A program made the translations under genes and the position numbers. DNA of 64,000 nucleotides. It comes from Paramoeba atlantica. Its lineage: Eukaryota; Protista; Discosea. Where the stretch lies: assembly GCA_977017575.1 (NCBI GenBank), contig CDRNVI010000021.1:620001-684000 (forward strand), in the 5' to 3' direction. Positions 4,378-36,946 of this stretch are shown piece by piece (the stretch's first letter is position 1; every line of letters starts with the position of its first letter). Below the pieces are notes generated by a model that was not told where the DNA came from, ran no database searches, and saw nothing but the letters and a program-made list of their open reading frames with translations.

Positions 4378-4927
4378 TTATAAACCCCTGGCCAAAATAA
4401 GGCACCCCCCTCCAAAATCCCAATGCTTCGCTTGTTTGAGCTAATTTTTGTAGCATTTTATAGATCTCAACACAAAGAGTTTGCGCGTTAAGAAACGGAA
4501 CAAAAAATACCAAATGCATACATTTGAAAGTCGGATTACTACATTTTTGCTCTCTTAAAAATTTCAAAAAAAAACTACGCCCTTTTAAACGAAAAACTCT
4601 GCCCCCCTCTAAGAACTTCAACTTCATGCGTTTTTGCTCATTTTTTTTGCAAGCGAGAGATCACGCTTTCCTCACGAAGATGATTGCTGCCCTTTTTTCA
4701 TAGGGAGGCCTCTCGTGCCCCCTGATCGCAGAATTGTGCCTTCCTGGAAAACAGAAGTGGAACATCAAGTTTTTTATATATTTTTTGTTCCAAGGTTTTG
4801 GTGGACTAAAAATGGCGGGAACGTACAGATCTCAAAAATCTGAACGAAATTATGGTATCATAACCCTACCATGCCCCCTCGTGCAAAAGATAAGGGGGGT
4901 GCCTTATTGGTGGCCAGGGGTTTATAA
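4378..4927. mobile_element. MITE with ~33-bp TIRs
   Basis: Left end TTATAAACCCCTGGCCA-AAATAAGGCACCCCCCT; right end AGGGGGGTGCCTTATTGGTGGCCAGGGGTTTATAA. No coding capacity. Confidence 0.75.
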
Positions 4928-4944
4928 CACTTACGGTATAACAA

Positions 4945-5263
4945 TACCGTAGACCCCCCCAGTAATAGACCCCCCCCAGTAACAAGGATTTGACCCTTTT
5001 TCGGCTGACCCCCAGTAACAAGGATTCGGCTCGGGAGGGTCTTTGGAGGGGGGAGGGGGTGTTTGAGCGGGTGATGGTGGCTGGGCGGGGTGAGGGCGGT
5101 TGCGAGGAGTGAATGGCGTGGTTGCGGGGTTGGATAGGCTGAAAATCAACGCACTCATGTACAAAAAATGTCTTTTCTCACCCAAAAAGCATATTCCCCC
5201 CAGTAACAAGGATTTGGCCATTTTGACCCAAAATCGATTCTATTACTGGGGGGGTCTACGGTA
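4945..5263. mobile_element. Tc1/mariner-pogo-type MITE, TA-flanked
   Basis: Perfect 25-bp inverted ends TACCGTAGACCCCCCCAGTAATAGA / TCTATTACTGGGGGGGTCTACGGTA, with internal CCCCAGTAACAAGGATT sub-repeats. Confidence 0.85.
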
Positions 5264-5955
5264 ATTCCCGAAATTTGAAAGATTGTAACCCATTTAAAGT
5301 CACTAGAAAAAAAATTAGAATTACATGTACGATAGCGCAGCAAGATCTCGGGGGGTAAACTCGTAACTGGGCGATTTTCATCAACTCCAATTTCCTTCAT
5401 TAAGACAAAATACACACCCCTGTACACAGCTGGAAGAACAATCACTAACTACTTGATCTAAGCTCATCTCAAGTATTAAAGGTAGTAATCACTACTTTTT
5501 AAGTAGTAACCATAATTAAATTACTAACATATACTCCCCCTAGTAAGGTACCCCCCAGGAAGAGAGATTTGGCCCTTCGCTCAAAAGTGAAAACCATAAT
5601 GCCTAGACGCTGAAATTTCGAAGGTCATCACCCTCACCACTGCAGTAGCTGAATTTTTATGCGGGTGTTTCCTTTTCGAGGCCCAGATTACACAACAGGG
5701 TTGTGCAACCAACAGGGTCCCTTTTGATCCATTCTCATTTTCAAAGCCCTTTTTGAGTTGAACGTTGACACGATAATTTGTCATTCTTGAGAGGTTCATT
5801 CTCATTTTCGTGACTCTCAGATTGGTGACGACCACTGTACCACATCTGTCTCAATTGTTCTGCATAAATTTTACTACCTTTGTCATCATCTATCTATCGC
5901 ATGTTTTAGCATTCCAGCGTCCATTTAAATCTTGATTGGCGCAGATTGCGCATAA

Positions 5956-7248
5956 ATGCCGTTTGAATGTCTTGGGAGTGTGTCCCTACATGCTTCAGAA
6001 TACGTCTCCAAAGTCGAAAATGTCAATTCCCATCACACAATGGCACTAACAACACAAAGTTCCTTATCCGAAGAACAGAAGCCATTGTCTCTTATTGATA
6101 TCGCCACACTACAAATCGTGAGTCGCGTATCATCATCCACTTCAAGTCGTATCACAGATTTTTCTTTTCCCGTTTTGTACAGCGACGGTTCCTCTACCCC
6201 TTTTTCTCCTCCACAACCGTCTCACCCCTCCACCCCTCATCTCCTCGCTTATTCCCACCACGATGGGACCGTGATCCTACACGACCTTCGTCAACCCTCT
6301 CCCTCCGCATGCCTTCGAGTTTGCCGCAATGCCGACACGCACACGGTGGCCTGGCAAGCCACACCCACATTCCAGCCCACCCCTCCCCAGGACACCCCCC
6401 CCACCCCCCTCGACTCACGCCGGTTCTCGTTCGACCTCCTTACGGTCGGGGACGGGGCGGATTACCTCGTGCTGGATCTTCGACAGCGACGCGTACTCAC
6501 GCGCGTCCAAAACCACAGTGACCGCGTCACCGTGCTGTGCTGTTCCCCCCATGGCGCCCCCTCTCCCGTGTTTTGCTCCGGCGCGGAAGACGGGCTTCTG
6601 TGTTGCACGGAACCCACAAAGGGTGAGCTGGGCTCCGTAAGTGCGGTGGGGAGTCCCATCCGTCGGGTCTGGGGGATGGGCGGGAAGGCAAGGAAGAGAT
6701 TGAAGCCACGAAAACGAAGCCTGGAGGGGGGGTTCGATCCGGAGAAGGGGGTGAGGGGGAGCACGACGCCGTGCTCGCTGTTGGTGGGCTTCACCTCGCT
6801 GGAGGAGGCGTTTGTGACGGATAGCAGGACGGGGGATATTTTGTTACGTGTTCCCCGTCGTGATGAGGCTTCCTATGTGGCAGAGGTTCTTCCGTACAGC
6901 TTGCCGTGGTGTGAGGAGCAAGGTTTCACACTTTGTTTGGGTCGGTATGCTGGATTAGAGGATAAGGGAAGCGGAGACTTGGAATTCTGGAATGTAAAGT
7001 CGCCCTTGGAGCAATTTGAGGATGTGGCGAAGTTGGGCAATCAGAAGAGTGGAGATTGTGTCTCCTGGAATGGCTTACTTGATTCTGGGATTGTACGGCA
7101 TGTGGATGCCATCTCAAATGCACATTCGGGTGAAGTGGTGCGTAGCATTTGCAGGGTCTCGCGTTTTGAGCGAGGACGGGGGATTTTGGGAACAGCTGGG
7201 GAGGATGGTTGCGTTGCGCTGTGGAGGATAAAAGCGATGAATGAGTAA
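5956..7248 (+). CDS. WD40-repeat protein (WDR89-like)
   Basis: WD-type segments HSDRVTVLCCSP..FCSGAEDGLL and HSGEVVRSI..LGTAGEDGCVALWRI. Confidence 0.7.
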   Translation: MPFECLGSVSLHASEYVSKVENVNSHHTMALTTQSSLSEEQKPLSLIDIATLQIVSRVSSSTSSRITDFSFPVLYSDGSSTPFSPPQPSHPSTPHLLAYSHHDGTVILHDLRQPSPSACLRVCRNADTHTVAWQATPTFQPTPPQDTPPTPLDSRRFSFDLLTVGDGADYLVLDLRQRRVLTRVQNHSDRVTVLCCSPHGAPSPVFCSGAEDGLLCCTEPTKGELGSVSAVGSPIRRVWGMGGKARKRLKPRKRSLEGGFDPEKGVRGSTTPCSLLVGFTSLEEAFVTDSRTGDILLRVPRRDEASYVAEVLPYSLPWCEEQGFTLCLGRYAGLEDKGSGDLEFWNVKSPLEQFEDVAKLGNQKSGDCVSWNGLLDSGIVRHVDAISNAHSGEVVRSICRVSRFERGRGILGTAGEDGCVALWRIKAMNE

Positions 7249-7412
7249 GATTTAAAGGTCATCGTAACGACTGTTTCTAGAAGTGGCACACTACATACGA
7301 TGCAGTGAGCTTAAATCTTTATATTGTGTACGGTAAATCATACTACGATAATAAGAAAATTTCTCAGAAGCATCAATATACATTTTCTTACTTTTTCAAC
7401 AGTTTACGTATC

Positions 7413-9857
7413 ATGCTTCGTCGCATAGGCTCGCGTACCACTGTAGGCGCTTTGTCCCGAACATCTGCTCTGTGTTATACACTTCCTTCTGGTTATCCAA
7501 TATCGTCGCTCTCTCATTCACTTCGGTTGTATGCTAAGCGTTCATCTCCGGTTCTCTCACATGTGGATGGAAATCAGAGTATAACGCCATGGCGTGGGGG
7601 AGAGGGCGGCGCTGGGTCTCGGGGCGCGAACGGCAATTCGCAAGGTGGCGAACCTTCCGGTCGTCAGTGGGTAAACCCGAAAGCTGTTCCCCAAGGTGAT
7701 CATTTAAAAAAATATGCGAGAGACCTCACCGAGGAGGCAGCCAATGGAAAGCTTGATCCCGTAATCGGTCGCGAGGAAGTTATTCGTCGAACAATTCAAG
7801 TGTTATCCCGCCGAACGAAGAACAACCCTGTGCTCATAGGAGAACCAGGCGTAGGAAAGACGGCTATTGTGGAAGGTCTTGCACAACGGATCATAAAAAA
7901 GGAAGTCCCAGAAAGCATCAAAAATAAAAAAGTGTTTGCACTGGATATTGGATCGCTGCTCGCTGGTGCAAAATTTCGTGGGGAATTTGAGGAACGACTT
8001 AAAGGAGTGCTTCGCGATACCATCGACGCTAAGGGCTCCGTTATTCTCTTTATTGATGAGCTACACACGCTGGTCGGAGCTGGGTCTTCTGGAGACGGTT
8101 CCATGGATGCCTCGAATATGCTAAAGCCTTCTCTTGCACGCGGCGAGCTCCATTGCGTCGGTGCGACAACGCTAAATGAGTATCGAAAGCATATCGAAAA
8201 GGACGCGGCCTTGGCACGACGATTCCAGAGCGTACTTGTGGAAGAGCCTACCGTAGAAGAGACCATTGCAGTTTTACGTGGTCTCAAAGGCAAATACGAG
8301 GCACACCACGGATGTATGATTAACGATAGTGCACTGATTTACTCAGCCGTGAACTCTCATAAGTATATTTCAGATCGTAAATTACCGGACAAAGCAATTG
8401 ATCTGATTGACGAAGCAGCTTCACGGCTTCGGCTACAACAGGAGAGTAAGCCGGAGATTGTAGACAGTGCCGAAAGGGAACTTGTTCGCCTTCGTATCGA
8501 GCTTGAGGCTTTACGTAAAGATCGGGACGAGTTGAGCAAAGCAAAAGTCAAAACGAAAGAAGAAGAAATCGCAGGCAAGCAGAAAGCGTACGCCGAGCTT
8601 GAAAGCAAATGGAATGAACAGAAATCTCTTTTTGATCGTATCAAGAGGCGCACCGAAGAGATCGAAAATTTACAAAGTCAACTTGATATTGCCACAAACA
8701 CGTCAGATTATCACAAAGCTTCAGAACTCAAATATAGTCGAATTCCTAAACTGAAAGCTGAAAACGAAGAAGACAAAAAGAAGGCGCGAACTGAAGATTT
8801 TATGGTATCCGAATCTGTGACTCCTATTGATATCGCCGGAGTTATTTCCAAAGCGACAGGTATTCCTGTACACAATCTGATGCAAGGCGAGCGTGACAAA
8901 CTGATCGACATGGACTCTACCCTCAAAGCACGCGTAATCGGACAGGACCATGCTATTGACTGTATCACAAATGTGGTTCGAATTTCCCGAGCCGGGCTTC
9001 ACAGCCAGAAACGACCACTTGGTAGCTTTCTTTTTCTTGGGCCTACGGGTGTGGGCAAAACAGAAGTAGCAAAGCAGCTGGCAAAGTTTCTTTTTGACGA
9101 CGAGAGCCATATTTGTCGTATTGATATGAGTGAGTATCAAGAGCGACACACCGTGCATCGCCTTATTGGCGCCCCACCAGGCTATGTGGGATATGAAGAC
9201 GGTGGTGAGCTTACCGAAAGCGTTCGACGACGACCTTACCAGATCGTTCTTTTTGATGAGTTTGAGAAAGCACATCCTTCTGTTTCAAACATTCTGCTGC
9301 AAGTGATGGACGACGGACACTTAACAGATTCTCATGGGCGTCGAGTTGACTTTAAGAACACTATTATCATACTAACAAGCAATCTTGCATCTGATCTCAT
9401 TGCAGCCCTTCCGGAGGACCAGCCGAGCAGCACAATACAAGAGGACATTATGAGAGTCGTTCAATCACGTCTTCCGCCCGAGTTCATCAATCGCTTGGAT
9501 GACATTATTCTCTTTAATCGCTTACAGCGCAAGCATATCAAACAGATCGTGAAAATCCAACTCGATCAGCTACAGGGAATCCTTTCGGAGCGTCAACTTA
9601 AGCTTAAAGTCGGTTCCAAGGCTTTGGACCAAATTTCTAGCATTGCATACAGTCCGCTTTACGGGGCCCGTCCTCTGCGCCGTATATTGCAAGGTACAGT
9701 GCTTAACCAAATTGCGCATATGTTAATAGACGGACGTATCAGAGACGGCGAAGATATACGTGTTGAAACGTCTCCTAAAGATGAATTAGGAATTGCTGTT
9801 CATCCGAATCATCCCGCACTTCGTCCTACTACTTCGGGGGCTATTACACCAAAGTAA
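7413..9857 (+). CDS. HSP78: Mitochondrial ClpB/Hsp78 AAA+ disaggregase
   Basis: Two AAA modules ([14 protein letters not shown]; [25 protein letters not shown]). It lacks the ClpB N-domain and starts MLRRIGSR like a presequence, so ATG 7413 is preferred over the ORF-track start at 7305. Confidence 0.92.
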
Positions 9858-10199
9858 GTATTGATGAGTACTAAAAGGTACTAAAAATGAGTACAAGCAT
9901 AATTATAGCAGATTTTAAAGTTTTTTTTGCTAGTTTTGTAGCTCTGTAGCTTGTTATCACTTGACAAGTGAAATTATCACTTCACGCTCCTTATTCACTT
10001 CACGCTTTTTCGATTCTTGAGGATATCTTTGTACATAAAAATGTATATATAGCAATTACATTCAATTTTTTTCTTATACACTTGTACTGTCTCTTGGTTT
10101 CCTTTTTTAAGAGCGTAGAATATCAGTTAAGTGCATAGTGCATCAGTTCAAAATATGGCGCCCCACATTATTCCTTTTTTTTCGTACTTTCCTACTGTT

Positions 10200-10650
10200 T
10201 TATGGTGTAAAAACATTTCGACGTTGTGAATTATCAGAACACACCAGAACGAGTAAAACAAAAAGTTTCAATTCCGAGTCCAATTTCCAGCCACCTACAC
10301 AGGCACGGCTAAATACGTGCTCAATGCGAGAGCAATTTTGGGCAAGTTGCTGATTGAATTCCAGCTTTTCAAGGGCTTTACTTTCATACTCATATTTTAT
10401 AGTGAGCGTTTGGGGGCCATGTTTGGTGTTCTCAAAAGGAGTAATCTTATAAGATGTTTGGTAAAAATCACCATCATCCAGGCAATGTAGGTTAAGTTTG
10501 ATAATATGTTTAATATTCCACAATCATCCATTATCATATTATCGTGGGAGTTTCAGCATGCTTAGATTGATATAATCATCCAGAACGTCGGCACAACGTG
10601 GAACTGTATCAATTACCATGCGGACATCAATGAAATAGCCCAAAAACAAA
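10200..10650 (-). pseudogene. Degenerate DDE_Tnp_4 (Harbinger/PIF-like) transposase remnant
   Basis: The minus-strand translation has DGDFY..ITPF..LT..FNQQLAQNCSRIEHVFSR, matching the C-terminal xD.GY..TP..FN..LS..R..IE..FG pattern. There are stops upstream. Confidence 0.45.
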
Positions 10651-10969
10651 TTACTGCGCTTCCTTTATACTGCGGCTTGTTCGGTACTGACTGCCCCTTG
10701 TATTCCTCCCTCGAAAGCAAAGCGTGTGCAGTCCCCCCCTATCTGTTATTGAATGAAACGGTGAAATTTAATACTAAAGTGATAAAAAGGTGAATAGCAT
10801 TTCTTAATTATTTCTTTCTTAATTGAACTCGTTGAAAAAAATCTGCACCCCCCTACTTAACTTTCACCCCTTTTTGAGAAAAAGAACTTCGCGGCGCCTG
10901 CTCCCCGAAGCCGCTCAAAAAGGACAATTAAATGTTGTCAGTTCATACCTATGACACTCTGGAATCTAA

Positions 10970-11039
10970 GTGATGATATTTCTTTATAAGTTCGTCTCCG
11001 TCTGAACTTATTTGATGACTATTTGGAATCTCATACTGA
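10970..11039 (+). ncRNA. Box C/D snoRNA candidate, copy 1
   Basis: Box C GTGATGA, D' CTGA (11002), C' TGATGA (11013) and D CTGA (11036); 70 nt. Confidence 0.65.
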
Positions 11040-11234
11040 AACGCGATATAATAAACCAGTGGGTTTTTTTGTGCACTAACCCAGCAACACAACGTAGGTC
11101 CCACATGTACAGGTCTCAAAAACAGGCATCCAGCTTATTTTTTATCACTATCATATACAACTGAATGTGTAGAATTTCCTGCTTTTTATAACTATCACTT
11201 TACCTACGAAGTGGTAATAGTAATTAGAATCTAA

Positions 11235-11304
11235 ATGATGACATTTCTTTATAAGTTCGTCTCCGTCTGAACTTATTTGATGACTATTTGGAATCTCATA
11301 CTGA
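11235..11304 (+). ncRNA. Box C/D snoRNA candidate, copy 2
   Basis: ATGATGA..CTGA..TGATGA..CTGA, near-identical to copy 1. Confidence 0.65.
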
Positions 11305-11491
11305 AATTTAAGTTTATAAAAAAGAGGTGTTTTTTGTGCACTAACCCCGACCTTAACTTTTTTGTGCCCAACTTTCAGACAAAAGTTGCTTTTTACAGAA
11401 ACGGTATATTTATCCCTTGAGTAGCTTTCCTGCACTATGCATAAAATCTCCTGCATAAAATTCTTGTATTAAATCCACCCGCATAAAATCA

Positions 11492-12127
11492 TTAAAGTAA
11501 ACAGCTATGGATGATATAAAAACAATTTGAAAAAAAATGGTCATCAACTTCTTGCGGAATTTCACAAATCTCTTCCTCATAATCAATTTCCTCTACTTCC
11601 AAGCTTTGTGCTACAGAAGGGAATAATTCTAATCTCCTTGTCCAAGCTTTTGATTGATTACCTGGATCTTCCAGGATTTGCTGAGGAATGCCAACTTTTT
11701 TCTGCTCAGAAACTGTTGCTTCACGATGGCAAGTAGTCTCCAAAGAAGCATAAGTTTTTTGAATCGCATCTCGCAATTGTGTCTTGCATAGGCGGGCTCC
11801 GAGACTTTTGGTGTTGCCAATTGGCTGGTTAGCGGTCAACTGGCCTCGACAGTAATTTAGCAAAAACTGGGTTCTATGATACACCAGTAGTGGCTTCAAG
11901 CGATTAAAAAGGCCTACGTCGCATGGCTGAAGAATTCCAGTGCATCTTGCTGGGATGTAAGTTATGCGAAGCCAAGGGTATGACCCACCTTCTTTGCATT
12001 GGCTTGTAATTTCTTCTTCAGTTTTCTGTGCGACGTGAACACTGCAGCAGTCTAGTAGTAGCAAAAGCGGCTCCTTATTCGTTAAATTCTTTTGTTGTAC
12101 GTCCTTATCGTAGTAAGTATGAAACAC
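11492..12127 (-). pseudogene. pogo/Tigger-like (DDE_1) transposase fragment
   Basis: PLLLLLDCCSVH and YIPARCTGILQPCDVGLFNRLK are the second and third catalytic-Asp motifs of pogo-family transposases. The N-terminus is missing. Confidence 0.8.
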
Positions 12128-31750: not shown

Positions 31751-33245
31751 GGCGCGAGCGACACCCCCGTGTTGGAGGACAATGACGGTTCGCAGGGAGG
31801 GGAGAAGGGAGAGGTGGCGGGGGTGAATAACTATACAAAGGAAGTAACCATACAAAGGAAGTAACCGAAAAAAAGTTAGAAACGTAGGTATAGCGTATTT
31901 TGACATGAAAAACTTGAACTAGACAGTATATAAATACAAACTTACGTCGGGTCCTGATATACTGTATGTATCAGGTTCGTAGGGAAAAATTTGAGCCCCC
32001 CCCAAAAAAGAAATCCGGCGCCGCTTCGCCAAAAAGGACAATTAGGTGGTGCGGGTGGGACTACGACAATTAAGTGGGGGGGCACAGTATAAATATGGCA
32101 GCGTTATAAATTCTGGCAAATTTATAATTATTTACGAAGGGGACAGTATACAGCCCAGTGGGGGGGCAGCTATATACTGCCCCCCCCCCCACTTAAGCGC
32201 AACCGGGTTTTGGCCGAAAATTGCGCTTAAGGAGCCTGGTCAGAAATATCTCAAGGGGAAAAGATATTTCGGGCAAAAAAAATAAAAAAAAGTCGCGCAG
32301 CTTCGCGGCGCGGATAGCATCTGTGCTTCTTAGCATTTATGTTGTGTACTTATGTTTCGTGAGTCATCTTCTAATCGGTGCCGTCTCCAAACTGTTCCTC
32401 ACCTTCGTGTCCTCGGTAAGTGCGGGGGGGGTGGGATGGGATGGGATGCAACATGTTTGACGATTCTGTGCATTTGCATATTGTAGTTACGATTCGTTAA
32501 AAGAAACAGAAAATGACTAAAAGTGAAGTTGTTCTAAAAAGGAGACTGCTTGTAAATTATTTTGGTTCACCGGCACTATAAATGTAGGTTGAAAATAAGT
32601 AAAATTTGTTTGAACAATCTTTCCCAAAAGGACTCAGGAAAAAAAATTTGATCTTTCGTTGATCTCTTTTCTTATTTTTTCTTTTTGCTTACTTACCAGA
32701 CCACACGTTTTTTCGATCAGATGTGCCCCCTACCTCTAATGGTAAGACCCCAAAAAACGTCCGAAATATGGGGAGAATACGAAATATGGGGAGAATCGGG
32801 TATTTGTACCAAAAGTTGGATTATTCTGGACCGTTTCGCAATTTTTTCCTTTTTAGTCCCTTCATTAAACGCTGAAGCAGTTCTCAACGCGAAGGGAGTA
32901 GCCGTGGTGGCTTCCAAGAGGGTTCAAACTGGATGGGAGTGTCCGGGAGCGCCTGGGAGCGCACCTTATCCTTTTTACAGGTCACCAATACCAAGTAGAC
33001 CAATGTACATGTAGTAGTACTACATGTACTACATGTACATGTAGTAGACCAATGTAGTATATCCTGGGCGGTCCATTGAGTATTCCAAGCATTGAAATAT
33101 AAGTTGGAACGTCATGAGTACGAGTGGAAACGTTTTAAAAAGTCACGTAAAAGTTTTTTCGAGCGGAAAAAAATCATCAGAAAAAAATGGATTTTAACCT
33201 ACATTTATAGTTCCGGTTACCCATTATTTTTTAACATTATCACTC

Positions 33246-33314
33246 CTTCGTAAACACGCTTGTTACCGGTCCCAAGCCCGGCACCGCCATATTCGGCGGA
33301 GTGTGAGGGTGAAG
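33246..33314 (+). ncRNA. Twister self-cleaving ribozyme, type P1
   Basis: P1 CTTCG/TGAAG, U^AA, P2 ACAC/GTGT, GC, P4 CCGG/CCGG enclosing L4 TCCCAAGC, P5 CCGCC/GGCGG, then GA and GGG (T1 partner of CCC). Predicted cleavage is between 33251 and 33252. Confidence 0.88.
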
Positions 33315-33490
33315 ATTTCAATACATCTATAGCACGATTATAAACTAAATATAATTGAACTACTTGTTTCTAGTATCCAGTATAACTGCTACATTTAGCT
33401 AAACATTTAACTAAACAATCATACACGCCTGAAAATGTCACGCATCAATTCGCTTGGTCCCGGCCTGGCAGTACTTCATCATCTGTAACA

Positions 33491-33710
33491 AGGCCCATGG
33501 GCTCCGTACCCTTCGGGTATCACTGCCCCAGCAGTCGTGCTGGGAGGCCCATGGGCTCCGTGTCCTTCGGGGCACACTTGCCGTTGCATTTATACATCCT
33601 CTGTAACGAGGCCCATGGGCTCCGTACCCTTCGGGGTACCACCGCCCCAGCATTCGTGCTGGGAGGCCCATGGGCTCCGTGTCCTTCGGTGCACACTTGC
33701 CGTTCCATTT
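33491..33710 (+). repeat. 2 x ~118-bp tandem repeat, each with two AGGCCCATGGGCTCCGT sub-repeats and UUCG-type hairpins
   Basis: Sub-repeats start at 33491, 33545, 33609 and 33664. Confidence 0.9.
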
Positions 33711-33820
33711 GCGCTATACATCCTCCTCTCCAGCATGTTTTTTTAATGAAGTGAAAACAGAATAAAAACAGAAGGGAGAGGGTGGGAAGTTGTGACGTGC
33801 TATGGCATGCCTGGCACCTA

Positions 33821-33978
33821 GGGCTTGGTCCCGGTAACATGGTGCTTACGAAGGAGTGATAATGAGGGAGTTGCTATGCCCTGTCCATGGTATCATGTTC
33901 AGGGGAACAGCGACCCCCCATTATCTCGGCGTAGTAAACACGCCTTGGCTTGCCTGGCACTACGATTCCCGAAAAAAA
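33821..33978 (+). repeat. Internal complementary region (reverse complement of the element's joined ends)
   Basis: 33846-33909 is a perfect 64-nt complement of [35586-35634 joined to 33235-33253 via the shared CATT]. Confidence 0.85.
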
Positions 33979-34040
33979 ACCTTAGTTCCTTAATCCTCAC
34001 TTGAGGCATGGTAACGGGAGTCCTCCCCCCTAAGAAGATT

Positions 34041-34309
34041 TGAAGTTGAAAAATATGGAGTGTTTGGGGGCGAGAAAACAAAGGGGGAGGAGTAATGTTG
34101 GTGCGTTATAGATCCCCCCATATGGAAGTATCGAGGCACACACCGGACGTCTCGGGTTGACGCTCGGAATACGAATATGAAGTTGAAAAATATGGAGTGT
34201 TCGGGGGAGAGAAAACAAAGGGGGGGAGTATTGTTGGTGCGTTATAGATCCCCCCATACGGAAGTATCGAGGCACACACCGGACATCTCGGGTTGACGCT
34301 CGGAATACG
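34041..34309 (+). repeat. 2 x 137-bp-period tandem duplication inside the element
   Basis: TGAAGTTGAAAAATATGGAGTGTT...GGTTGACGCTCGGAATACG at 34041 and 34178. Confidence 0.9.
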
Positions 34310-34572
34310 GCTTTTCAGGATATCTCGCCTAGTAGGAATATTGAATCAGAAATTCAGACCGACGATAGTGAACGCGTTAGTGCTTATTCGGTGGAGAGAG
34401 AAAAAAGAAAACTAGAAAAAAAAAGCAAACGGTTGCTTTGCTTGATGCATTTATACCCGATATATTCTTTGTTAACGAAGATTCATCATAAATACTGAAG
34501 GAGCAACTTGGTTTCTTTACATCAACACACCTAAAACATGGTTTACCATGGGGTATCAAATGTTGCACGGCA

Positions 34573-35157
34573 TTGAAAAGTACCCAAAATTTTATTGAAT
34601 GGATAAATTGTCCCCCTTTTCACGGGAAAATAAGGAAACTAGCCTCCGGGGTTTGGTTACAACATTTATTAGAACTCGTGGAATGCGGGGTGCTACGTGT
34701 GGCACACGACTCTCGATCATCATCACGTTTATATTTACGTTACTTCGAGGCATCAAAAGGGGAGGAATTGTCAAGAAGTATTGCGGATGGAACACCACTA
34801 AATGAGATGTGCAATCGCCCTCCTTGCTTGAATTTTCCAGCTATCGCTGAAATTATCCATGTAATAGAAAATTTCCCCAACGTAAACTTTTTATCCGCTG
34901 ATATGCGACACTGGTTTCACCAGAGTGAAATACCATCAGAATCGGGGCGTACATCAGTTAGGAGATCGATGTGTAATGAGATCACGGAAATGCATGGACA
35001 GATAGGGAAACATGGACATTCTTTTCGAATTTTCCATATTAAATCTAAAGAAAACCCAGCGGACGGGTTGACTCGAGAAGAGCATAATTATGACATAAAA
35101 GAAGCACTCCTGAACTCAGCTCTAAGAGCTGGCGATGTACATGTAGACCCTATGTAA
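34573..35157 (+). pseudogene. Internally deleted reverse transcriptase / RNase H ORF
   Basis: RT N-terminal motifs LVECGVL..YFEASK..SRSIADGTPLNEMCNRPPCLNFP..FLSADMRHWFHQ are joined directly to an RNase H C-terminus GRTSVRR..IFHIKSKENPADGLTR. No YxDD is present, and the ORF start is TTG. Confidence 0.7.
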
Positions 35158-35812
35158 GAATTATAGAAAGCGTAACTGGAGGAAACAAACACACGAATCT
35201 AGAGTAATTAGTAAAATTTATGAGTGGATAGCATGAGGAATGGCAAAGAAAGTAAATCCCCCCCCAAAAGAAAAAACGTTAACCAAAGGTTTACGCCAAC
35301 CCTTTGTTCTATTGCACTCAAAGTTTTCTACTCCATTATGCAGTAAAATTTCCTTCGTATTTCTTCTTCCGAAAATTTTCTATAAATGCACCCTGGTCTC
35401 ACACCCCAGCCTTCTCGACGCATGAGTAAAACCGAGCTGCCGGGGAGATCACTCGGTTGTGGGAGCGGGCCCCTTAAGTGGGAAGCGACTGGGCTGCGAA
35501 ATGAACCGAAAATATATTTTTTTCGGCAATCGTAGTGCCAGGCAAGCCAAGGCGTGTTTACTACGCCGAGATAATGGGGAGTTGATGTTCCCCTGAACAT
35601 GATACCATGGACAGGGCATAGCAACTCCCTCATTTAGTGTGTGAACGAATCGTTTGCAACCTGCTTTCGAGAGCACGCCATGCTGTAGTGGTACGAAAAG
35701 TGTTCCCAGCATATTTTCATATCTTTGAACGAGAATGCACCCAGCCAATTTCATTAGCACTTCCCCTATGGCAACTGGTCGTATGCTTGGTTTATTTATT
35801 GTCCTAGCTGAG

Positions 35813-36946
35813 AATTTCTAGAACTTGCGTTTTCACCAAGTCTTTTCTTCCACGTAAATTCTACCAGGACCGGTGGGATCGGCCGGGATCGTTTTAGCCC
35901 TCTAAGTCAAAGTCTTCTCTTTCGCCAATACCAATCTAGAAGGATTGTAAAATCGCTGAACTCGAAAAAGCATTGGAGTATTTTTTTAGAAACAAAAATT
36001 GGGGGAAAAAAGGGAGATTCCACCGTAAAGATTCCACTTTTTGTTTAGTTTCTCCTACTGTCCCCCCCCCTCTACTTATGCGCAACCGTTTGACCCGGCC
36101 ACTTAAGCGCAATTTTGACGCATCGTTCAGAATAACAGCGCCGCAAAGCGGCGGGCATTTTTTTGGGGGGTACGAATTTTTGTACAGATTTTCACCTCTG
36201 TTGAAATGGAGAGTCTGCAGGTAGTCCCTTTGGGGAGTTCGAGAATTATCTTCATCGATCTCTAGAGATCTCCTCTGATCCACACTGACCTCCACCGATC
36301 TGTACGGCGAGTCTGCATACTGTACTGTACATCAGTCTAAGTCTGTTTTACAGGGCTTCCTTGCTGTCTTTATCGCAGGTATCTTGACGACCCTTGATAA
36401 AAACTTCTAACTTCACGCTGAATACATCCGAAACTTTGGCTTTTGGAATGGCTGCGGTTCCAACCCATTCATGTACCTCAGACACTATCGCGCCACATAA
36501 ATCATTCTTATACATGCAACGATCCGTGTCAGAAGAATGGGACATCGCTTTTGATATCGACTTTGGAGGACCGTAGAGGAAGAAGGGGGAACAAGACCAA
36601 AAGCAGAAAGCGGATTGCTAGGGGGGATAGTATACAAAAAGCAGCCCCGAAGGGTACCCCGCGTATATAACTCATGATAGAAACACGCGCCGCGAAGCGT
36701 CGCAAAAAAATTTTTTCACCCCCTTTTATGGGGCTGTTTATGCGCAATTTTAGGCCAAAACCTGGTTGCGTTTAAGTGGGGTGGTCAGTACCTTCATATG
36801 CACATTGTTTTTGATTTTTAACAATTGAATGAGTTTCCTCAAAAATAGTTGCTCTTTCTTTCGTCGAATTTCTAGAACTCGCGTTTTCACCAAATCTTTT
36901 CTTCCACGTAAATTCAACCAGGACCGGTGGGATCGGCCGGGATCGT
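35813..36946. repeat. Pair of ~80-bp direct repeats (35813-35892 and 36867-36946)
   Basis: AATTTCTAGAACT(T/C)GCGTTTTCACCAA(G/A)TCTTTTCTTCCACGTAAATTC(T/A)ACCAGGACCGGTGGGATCGGCCGGGATCGT. Confidence 0.85.
36056..36790. mobile_element. TIR element (TA|CTG-C-run ends); related solo ends at 32070-32089 and 32175-32230
   Basis: TACTGTCCCCCCCCCTCTACTTATGCGCAACC / GGTTGCGTTTAAGTGGGGTGGTCAGTA. The reverse complement of the right end closely matches 32175-32230. Confidence 0.6.

Follow-up and report, generated by a model that had tools for sequence, protein, structure and literature searches.

The window analysed here is a 64,000-nucleotide stretch of Paramoeba atlantica DNA (assembly GCA_977017575.1, contig CDRNVI010000021.1, positions 620,001 to 684,000 of the forward strand), and it contains a mobile element with self-complementary ends, headed by a predicted twister ribozyme. 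The unit at window positions 33235-35634 is probably a complete, non-autonomous deletion derivative of a tyrosine-recombinase retrotransposon of the DIRS order with a VIPER-like gene order, which would multiply by the cycle set out below. The identification of the element is secure, and the mechanism, deduced from comparative evidence, appears well supported. With less assurance, we favour the view that the element stands for a lineage of tyrosine-recombinase retroelements not described before, in which twister, hairpin array and internal complementary region (ICR) form a fixed 5' module, the ICR serving as a heritable master copy from which the leader and the P1 stem of the ribozyme are rebuilt. 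Reading of the sequence and a repeat scan placed all parts in one 2,400-bp unit with sharp ends, including the remnant of a gene for reverse transcriptase (RT) and RNase H:

33235-33238, + strand: left core CATT, the first four bases of the element; all copies begin with CATTATCAC, with unrelated sequence upstream, and a single CATT is also present at the ICR junction.
33235-33251, + strand: leader of 17 nt on the 5' side of the predicted twister cut, including the 5' strand of P1; identical to the reverse complement of the ICR copy within subfamilies, with the leader variants TCC, AGAC, AGGC and AGCT.
33246-33314, + strand: type-P1 twister ribozyme with a P5 hairpin, assigned by its core and by covariation; predicted cut between U33251 and A33252.
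33477-33710, + strand: hairpin array, two units of 119 nt with UUCG-type loops (Tandem Repeats Finder); the string of hairpins folds with a z-score of -4.75.
33821-33978, + strand: ICR; complements of the left end (33821-33864) and of the right end (33861-33978).
34041-34309, + strand: tandem repeat, two units of 136 nt (Tandem Repeats Finder), where relatives have gag.
34549-35157, + strand: internally deleted RT/RNase H gene; the open frame 34573-35157 (194 aa, amino acids) fuses the RT N-terminus in frame to the RNase H C-terminus.
35385-35516, + strand: conserved structured 3' domain, common to autonomous relatives; about 80% identity between subfamilies with RT about 50% identical.
35517-35634, + strand: right end, complementary to ICR positions 33861-33978; contains left-end bases 1-25 in inverted form (35552-35576) and a terminal hairpin (35573-35634).
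35631-35634, + strand: right core CATT, most likely the CANT of the target itself; right ends read CATT, CAAT or CAGT among copies.

Three inverted repeats were obtained in the scan: 33861-33978 with 35517-35634 (118 nt, 97%), 33235-33257 with 33842-33864 (23 nt, 96%) and, adjoining the latter, 33261-33279 with 33821-33839 (19 nt, 89%). Taken as its reverse complement, the internal block 33821-33978 therefore consists of the right end followed by the left end, in agreement with the initial annotation, whose order of parts (left end, hairpin array, internal block, tandem repeat, RT/RNase H remnant, right end) was recovered part by part. The two halves of the block overlap in a single AATG at 33861-33864, the reverse complement of CATT, and the opposite strand reads right end, CATT, left end, with CATT present once. 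CATT stands also at both termini, 33235-33238 and 35631-35634, so that its annotated occurrence at each end and once at the junction could be read directly. Long inverted terminal repeats (ITRs) were absent as annotated, but the element is not free of ITRs: left-end bases 1-25 recur inverted at 35552-35576 with 80% identity, 58 nt inside the right end, and this copy is nearly invariant across subfamilies. Thus the family has a vestigial short ITR. Direct repetition of a terminus is limited to the 25-nt left end, which recurs inside the ICR. This bears on the view that the unit is an ordinary element of the VIPER/TATE or Ngaro type whose ends are regenerated via split direct repeats (A1 ... B1 A2 B2). 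The gene order gag, recombinase, RT/RNase H of the relatives described below and the host type fit such an element (PMC6681497), however the repeated end sequences have inverted orientation and are found in the 5' part of the element, which makes this view very improbable. A split-direct-repeat element was rejected on the same grounds, with only the 25-nt left end repeated directly in the ICR, and the annotated absence of split direct repeats stands.

Further copies of the full 2,400 bp, 94-99% identical, are present in the 45.7-Mb assembly, and weaker matches of about 80% are limited to the ends and the internal block. In exact-pattern scans of the genome, left ends and ICR junctions were found 22 times each, in every case oriented oppositely. 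Every left end starts at the sequence given above and every right end stops at ...CTCA(T/A/G)T ahead of unrelated sequence. Some pairs of loci share their flanks (C21/C32, C2/C12, C67/C185 and C54/C99); we take them for haplotigs or recent duplications and not for separate insertions. After setting these aside, about eight to nine independent insertions remain for subfamily A, to which the window copy belongs. The identical architecture and end points in many copies with unrelated flanks exclude chance, and a chance inverted repeat was rejected accordingly. Ends and internal block recur as one unit across copies; a composite of two unrelated adjacent elements, named in the initial annotation as a way in which it might fail, was rejected as well. 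Copies with different boundaries, another such way, were not encountered among these loci, all of which share the sharp ends.

Longer copies share the ends, the twister and the ICR with the window element and carry genes for a gag-like protein, a tyrosine recombinase and RT/RNase H, in that order. An intact relative for comparison was reached via the recombinase P0001 on a contig of an ENA assembly (L055). Positions 4404-11660 of this contig hold a near-intact element of 7.26 kb, with the left end and twister at 4404, a hairpin array at about 4820-5500 and the internal block at about 5900-6046. These are followed by an open reading frame (ORF) of 347 aa without known domain at the gag position, a recombinase of 293 aa, an RT of 480 aa, a frame break, the RNase H C-terminus and the right end. 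In the genome of the window, locus L040 contains an ORF of 312 aa with weak matches to Phage_integrase and to a SAM-like N-domain, and genome relatives of this recombinase sit directly upstream of frames like the 194-aa ORF of the window, some of which are open for 587 aa. Among six recombinases AALR, K, HTLRHGG and HY are invariant, which is the R-K-HxxR-HY set of tyrosine recombinases. The Pfam scores for Phage_integrase and the SAM-like N-domain were below the cut-off; a language-model atlas groups the protein with tyrosine recombinases. A database search with the recombinase returned six ENA proteins, all unnamed, and a search with the RT returned three; a cluster look-up gave only 'hypothetical protein'. 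RVT_1 matched weakly in the RT of L055 and in P0009; the latter protein matched also RVT_3 and has readable RNase H motifs. Motif C of the RT is (W/Y)(I/V/Y)DN instead of YxDD in 11 of the 11 relatives inspected (L055 9227-10669; P0009, P0013-P0026). The variant is present also in intact RT/RNase H proteins at 38% mutual identity. Of the full-length autonomous element anticipated in the initial annotation, the gag-like ORF, a recombinase with its catalytic residues and RT/RNase H were found, but not the YxDD, as motif C ends in DN. The predicted membership in a tyrosine-recombinase family was borne out by these longer copies, and the objection that no recombinase-encoding relative exists does not hold.

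The window copy has lost most of this coding capacity. In a tblastn comparison to L055 its ORF aligned to RT residues 72-205 (49%) and then, in frame, to the last 68 RNase H residues (49%); in intact 587-aa frames some 300 residues separate the two parts. The window ORF has thus undergone an in-frame deletion of about 300 residues of RT/RNase H, and by this alignment the copy lacks gag and the recombinase as well as the catalytic core of the RT and most of RNase H. No similarity to gag or recombinase was found in the window element by tblastn with the L055 proteins. A Pfam search of the 194-aa ORF gave no match, and its identity came from the intact relative. Since the deletion derivative has itself multiplied while lacking gag, recombinase and RT core, it is non-autonomous, as annotated. 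One candidate for a master copy, the element at C2/C12, matches the window copy at 90% identity in the first 939 nt and contains recombinase fragments and a 334-aa ORF at the gag position; it was rejected because no right end was present within 9.8 kb.

The ribozyme at 33246-33314 consists, in this order, of the P1 strand CUUCG, U^AA with the cut marked, P2 ACAC, GC, a linker, P4 CCGG, the loop UCCCAAGC and the second CCGG, then a P5 hairpin, P2' GUGU, GAGGG and P1' UGAAG. The layout was also compared with the rice twister sequence, as a lead only. Checked against the published description (PMC8501958), the core nucleotides, the U-A cut site, the stems P1, P2 and P4 and the potential for the pseudoknots T1 and T2 are all present. 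Three subfamilies keep all core bases, with P5 stems of 5, 7 and 8 bp that are unrelated in sequence and with a change from G-U to A-U in P1 between subfamilies. A covariance model built from five copies matched subfamily C (58 bits) and four metagenome contigs (33-58 bits). In the alignment, which was fitted to the model, 97.3% of the cells are paired, against 32-42% for slid partners; compensatory changes occur in 10 of the 18 pairs, comprising all five of P1 and all five of P5, and none of 500 shuffles reached the observed pairing values. At gathering thresholds Rfam gave no match in the whole window. The Rfam model twister-P1 scored up to 37.4 bits (E 2.7e-5) on a full-length relative and yielded 56 full-length sub-threshold matches genome-wide, at 18-39 bits with a maximum of 39.1. 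The assignment as twister therefore follows from core conservation and covariation and not from the Rfam threshold, below which its scores lie. Many of the 56 matches fall outside copies of this retroelement family, so twisters may head other element families in this genome.

The annotated role of the twister in setting the 5' end of the element RNA is supported in silico from two independent sides, by the conserved core with its covarying stems and by an identity between left end and ICR that stops at the predicted cut. For the latter, the left end of each element was aligned to the reverse complement of its own internal block. Both are identical for 19-20 nt, through U^AA, in subfamilies A, B and B2; subfamily C (L040) has one mismatch in the leader stretch, at core position 3 (CACT versus CATT). 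The leader itself differs between subfamilies (...CAC-TCC-TTCG, -AGAC-TTCA, -AGGC-TTCA and -AGCT-CCA). Past the cut, all subfamilies have an A to G difference at +3 and one G lost in ACACGC; a change of GGUCCC to GGGACC is confined to A, B and B2, while in subfamily C other bases are changed. In the right-end half, likewise, the ICR tracks the right end of its own element, subfamily by subfamily. Identity up to the cut and fixed mismatches beyond it are expected if the leader is copied from the ICR and the sequence from about +3 onward from the RNA. Judged by this boundary, and without recourse to the ribozyme prediction, the 5' end of the RNA lies no more than 2 nt from the predicted cut. The first difference between left end and reverse-complemented ICR is always the A to G at +3 (window 33842-33845; L033, L055, L040 and L056), in four subfamilies and an unrelated metagenome element. 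This element, on the minus strand of contig Ga0169931_10319762 (L056, 546-1105), has an unrelated sequence and the same 5' module: a twister, a series of about 12 short CAGGG-AAGA-CCCUG hairpins, and its leader repeated internally in inverted form, identical through UAA and then with a G. The leader of L056 is unrelated, of about 27 nt, and the core is apparently TTC. Further twisters of this subtype are present on contigs L057-L059.

Were the internal block a functionless relic, left by a dimer junction or by the backward insertion of a second copy, nested and rearranged copies, which are frequent in this genome, would supply its origin. However, the location of the block is constant across all subfamilies and L056, its sequence matches the termini of its own element and not those of other subfamilies, the fixed differences are common to subfamilies, and termini and block are about 80% identical where RT is about 50% identical. 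A passive origin is hardly credible on these observations. An RNA end at the boundary may also come from an internal transcription start near base 18-20, and the twister would then have another role, such as freeing the element from an upstream host messenger, or none, as a decaying passenger. The boundary indeed shows where the RNA begins and not what makes that end, and the DIRS-1 transcript begins inside the left repeat, with the ICR restoring the remainder (PMC7192593). Such a start is nevertheless unlikely for the family at hand: the boundary stays within 2 nt of the predicted cut despite leader lengths of 17, 18 and about 27 nt (the last in L056), and the twister keeps an intact core and compensatory stems across a divergence at which RT is about 50% identical. 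In addition, gene-specific promoters are unusual under transcription of the kinetoplastid type, which is polycistronic.

As to the product of the cleavage, the twister could trim transcripts of tandem or circular DNA to unit length and thereby give rise to a retrozyme-like RNA circle, in which the leader is kept at the RNA 3' end and the junction is expected to read ...CCCUCAUUAUCACUCCUUCGU|AAACAC. Twister products have the ends that are joined by RtcB-type RNA ligases, and in RNA the ICR, being complementary to both ends of the element, would keep these next to each other. There are precedents for retroelements with ribozymes that form circular RNA (PMC4918200, PMC7229834). Against this, no head-to-tail junctions with an intact twister occur in the genome, the integrated element is a single copy without a downstream twister, and, owing to the fixed mismatches immediately 3' of the cut, an RNA splint would pair less well precisely where the nick lies. 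An RNA circle is accordingly quite unlikely, and repair of the complementary DNA (cDNA) on the ICR remains our preferred reading.

The 3' part of the element is conserved as well. Its last 250 nt are about 80% identical between subfamilies with RT about 50% identical, and RNAalifold gave 81 pairs common to the subfamilies for 35385-35634, 19 of them with compensatory changes. The terminal 62-nt hairpin (35573-35634) folds with -38.6 kcal/mol (z -5.26), its 3' CAUU paired with AAUG, and its stem covaries between subfamilies. In a fold across the junction the terminal stem extends into the left end.

The integration sites were resolved best for subfamily B. The left flank of its copies ends in ...GATAAAGATA, and the right side reads CAGT followed by TTCTGTACCTTGTTG. 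The 26-mer AAAGATACAGTTTCTGTACCTTGTTG is found uninterrupted 778 times in the genome; these occurrences are empty sites for subfamily B. The insertions split the 26-mer as GATA|CATT...CCCT-CAGT|TTCTG without target duplication, CATT at the left junction coming from the element and CAGT at the right junction from the target. Flanks of subfamily A likewise have no duplication. Their right core is CATT, CAAT or CAGT among copies, which fits a putative CANT target. Across the family, the left core is CATT in all copies but L040 (CACT). The first 177 nt of the right flank of the window copy occur only in C21 and its duplicate C32, and the left flank is another dispersed repeat. The site of this copy before insertion is predicted to read ...TTATTTTTTAA-CATT-TAGTGTGTG..., and a circle junction is predicted as ...CTCCCT-CATT-ATCACTCCTTCGTAAACACGC, distinguishable from the ICR, which reads ...CGTAAGCACC. 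Empty sites had been proposed as a check of the annotation; those of subfamily B were found, without target-site duplication and with the core CAGT, but not the single-CATT site at the window locus. Copies of the 26-mer are dispersed on both strands with different sequences after them (flanks of L031, L033, L034 and L037 examined). We take the 26-mer to resemble the 3' part of kinetoplastid spliced leaders. One possibility for its dispersal is the retroposition of trans-spliced RNAs.

The cycle proposed for the element starts with transcription, for the window copy probably within a + strand polycistron. Its annotated sense orientation to the polycistron holds for this copy, which lies in a + strand gene array; the comparison was limited to it. 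Such a location may dispense with a promoter of its own. The twister would cut between U33251 and A33252, leaving a defined 5'-OH end and removing the first 17 nt including one strand of P1. An RT supplied in trans by an autonomous relative would make the minus-strand cDNA, with, more speculatively, the 3'-terminal hairpin as primer. The ICR of the cDNA reads right end, CATT, left end, so that both cDNA ends could anneal to it as in the Cappello model for DIRS-1. Synthesis from the cDNA 3' end would then fill in the 17 missing bases until the 5' end is reached, and the ends would be joined. The resulting circle, with the junction CCCT-CATT-ATCAC, would be integrated by the recombinase at a CANT site. 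The predicted outcome, no target duplication with the CATT of the element on the left and the CANT of the target on the right, agrees with the insertions seen in the sequence.

Several observations weigh against this cycle. Self-cleavage and the position of the RNA 5' end are predictions from the sequence, and the Rfam scores are low: Twister-P5 reached 17.9 bits at a loose threshold against a gathering threshold of 37.6, as a loop-level match, and twister-P1 reached 18.3 bits for the window copy against 67.2. The conserved A to G mismatch at +3 is not predicted by a simple fill-in model. An empty site for the window locus was not present in the assembly, which also contained no match to a circle or tandem junction with intact twister; Logan contigs of four DNA runs likewise gave neither an RNA start nor an empty site or circle junction, and one possible RNA run yielded nothing. 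No autonomous partner with an RT near the remnant of subfamily A was found, the best other RTs being about 53% identical. The model gives, moreover, no account of RNA 3'-end formation or of the RT primer.

The element shares with the DIRS order the RT/RNase H and the tyrosine recombinase, both in relatives, and an insertion without target duplication at a short shared sequence. Of the features of DIRS1-like elements, an ICR complementary to both outer ends is present, while long ITRs with the ICR beside the right repeat are absent. The ICR occupies the interval 590-750 nt from the left end in the window copy and precedes gag in L055. The gene order is VIPER-like in L055 and in the genome of the window, without the split direct repeats of VIPER-like elements. 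The terminal architecture is a different one, as the initial annotation had it; the ICR lies upstream of gag, with neither long ITRs nor split direct repeats.

In DIRS-1 the ICR is essential for retrotransposition and has been proposed to restore the missing ends, the short sequence of the circle junction is found at both ends after integration, and a 3' hairpin has been suggested as primer, a role that is speculative for the terminal hairpin described here (PMC7192593). DIRS-1 and DIRS1-like elements have in common with our family the RT/RNase H, a gag-like ORF, a tyrosine recombinase and the lack of target duplication. Shared with DIRS-1 are also the ICR made of both end complements (88 bp = 33 + 55 there, about 158 bp = 45 + 118 here) and the short sequence common to junction and both ends. 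DIRS-1 differs by ITRs of about 300 bp and an ICR beside the right repeat, compared with 25 nt at 80% identity and an ICR on the 5' side of gag, and by an RNA 5' end that comes from the transcription start, whereas here a twister is placed for it and 17-18 nt would have to be restored. VIPER and TATE share the kinetoplastid host group, which is presumed here, the gene order and, with SIRE, short non-autonomous derivatives with common ends; like subfamily B, TATE targets a single position within a repeated host sequence (PMC6681497). By their description, with split direct repeats and no ICR or ribozyme reported, they are set apart (PMC6681497). Ribozymes at the 5' end of retroelement RNAs have precedents. 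A twister-type ribozyme processes the RNA of the co-transcribed schistosome element Perere-3 (PMC8501958), however this is a target-primed non-LTR (long terminal repeat) element, and its upstream P1 strand derives from the target-site duplication, whereas that of the window element is its own and is backed up in the ICR. In L1Tc of Trypanosoma cruzi an HDV-like (hepatitis delta virus) self-cleaving ribozyme frees the RNA 5' end (PMC3185411), but in this class the cut falls at the 5' edge of the ribozyme itself and costs no sequence, and L1Tc is a non-LTR element without recombinase or ICR. Retrozymes are also non-autonomous retroelements with small self-cleaving ribozymes (PMC4918200); they have hammerheads in both direct repeats, form circular RNAs and borrow the LTR or non-LTR machinery, in contrast to one twister, no direct repeats and recombinase-based integration in the present element.

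New is the combination of known parts, a twister with a DIRS-type repair splint. No paper joining the twister with tyrosine recombinase or DIRS elements, or with kinetoplastid retrotransposons, was found in open-access and bioRxiv full text. The rebuilding of DIRS-type ends has been a model for forty years with one direct test, in Dictyostelium (PMC7192593). The canonical twister is present in thousands of genomes with almost no assigned function, the one case being the twister variants in a schistosome non-LTR element (PMC8501958). If the proposed cycle is true, a ribozyme defines where the RNA begins at the cost of its own P1 stem in each round, which would give the canonical twister a defined natural role and provide a clean system for the DIRS end-repair model. 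The 5' module in unrelated environmental sequences would then make the lineage widespread among protists. The family also shows that a ribozyme in need of sequence upstream of its cut can still be retroelement-borne, and that recombinase elements of the kinetoplastid type are not all of the split-direct-repeat kind. Since the RNA end is predictable to the base, the repair spans 17-18 nt and the template is marked by subfamily variants, the model makes a sharp, testable prediction: new copies inherit at their left end the changes made in the ICR copy but not those made in the left end itself.

The one-strand gene arrays, the spliced-leader-like 26-mer and Euglenozoa as nearest atlas clusters of the RT suggest a kinetoplastid-like host type. 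For such an organism the genome is unusually rich in retroelements: a first-look search with RVT_1 gave 1,851 candidates in 45.7 Mb, many with open frames of more than 1,000 aa. The genome is repeat-rich, and nested and rearranged copies are common. The number of hairpin-array units differs between copies of the element, and the 119-nt unit is expanded to long arrays at C34:92878-95877, C28:17414-20636, C37:161236-163203 and C99:107081-108566, with many matches to element bases 241-491; the array length is therefore unstable. In L055 and in metagenome contig L056 this position is taken by arrays of unrelated sequence. The element is immediately preceded on the left by a repeat of about 680 bp (32553-33233) with 42-nt inverted ends (81%), which looks like a DNA transposon of the MITE (miniature inverted-repeat transposable element) type. 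It has at least 17 genome copies with 84-88% identity, most of them ending within a few bases of 33233. The right flank contains two dispersed repeats, 35812-35892 (about 80 nt, 95-98% identity, at least 18 other loci) and 35903-36034 (about 120 nt, 83-93% identity, at least 20 loci).

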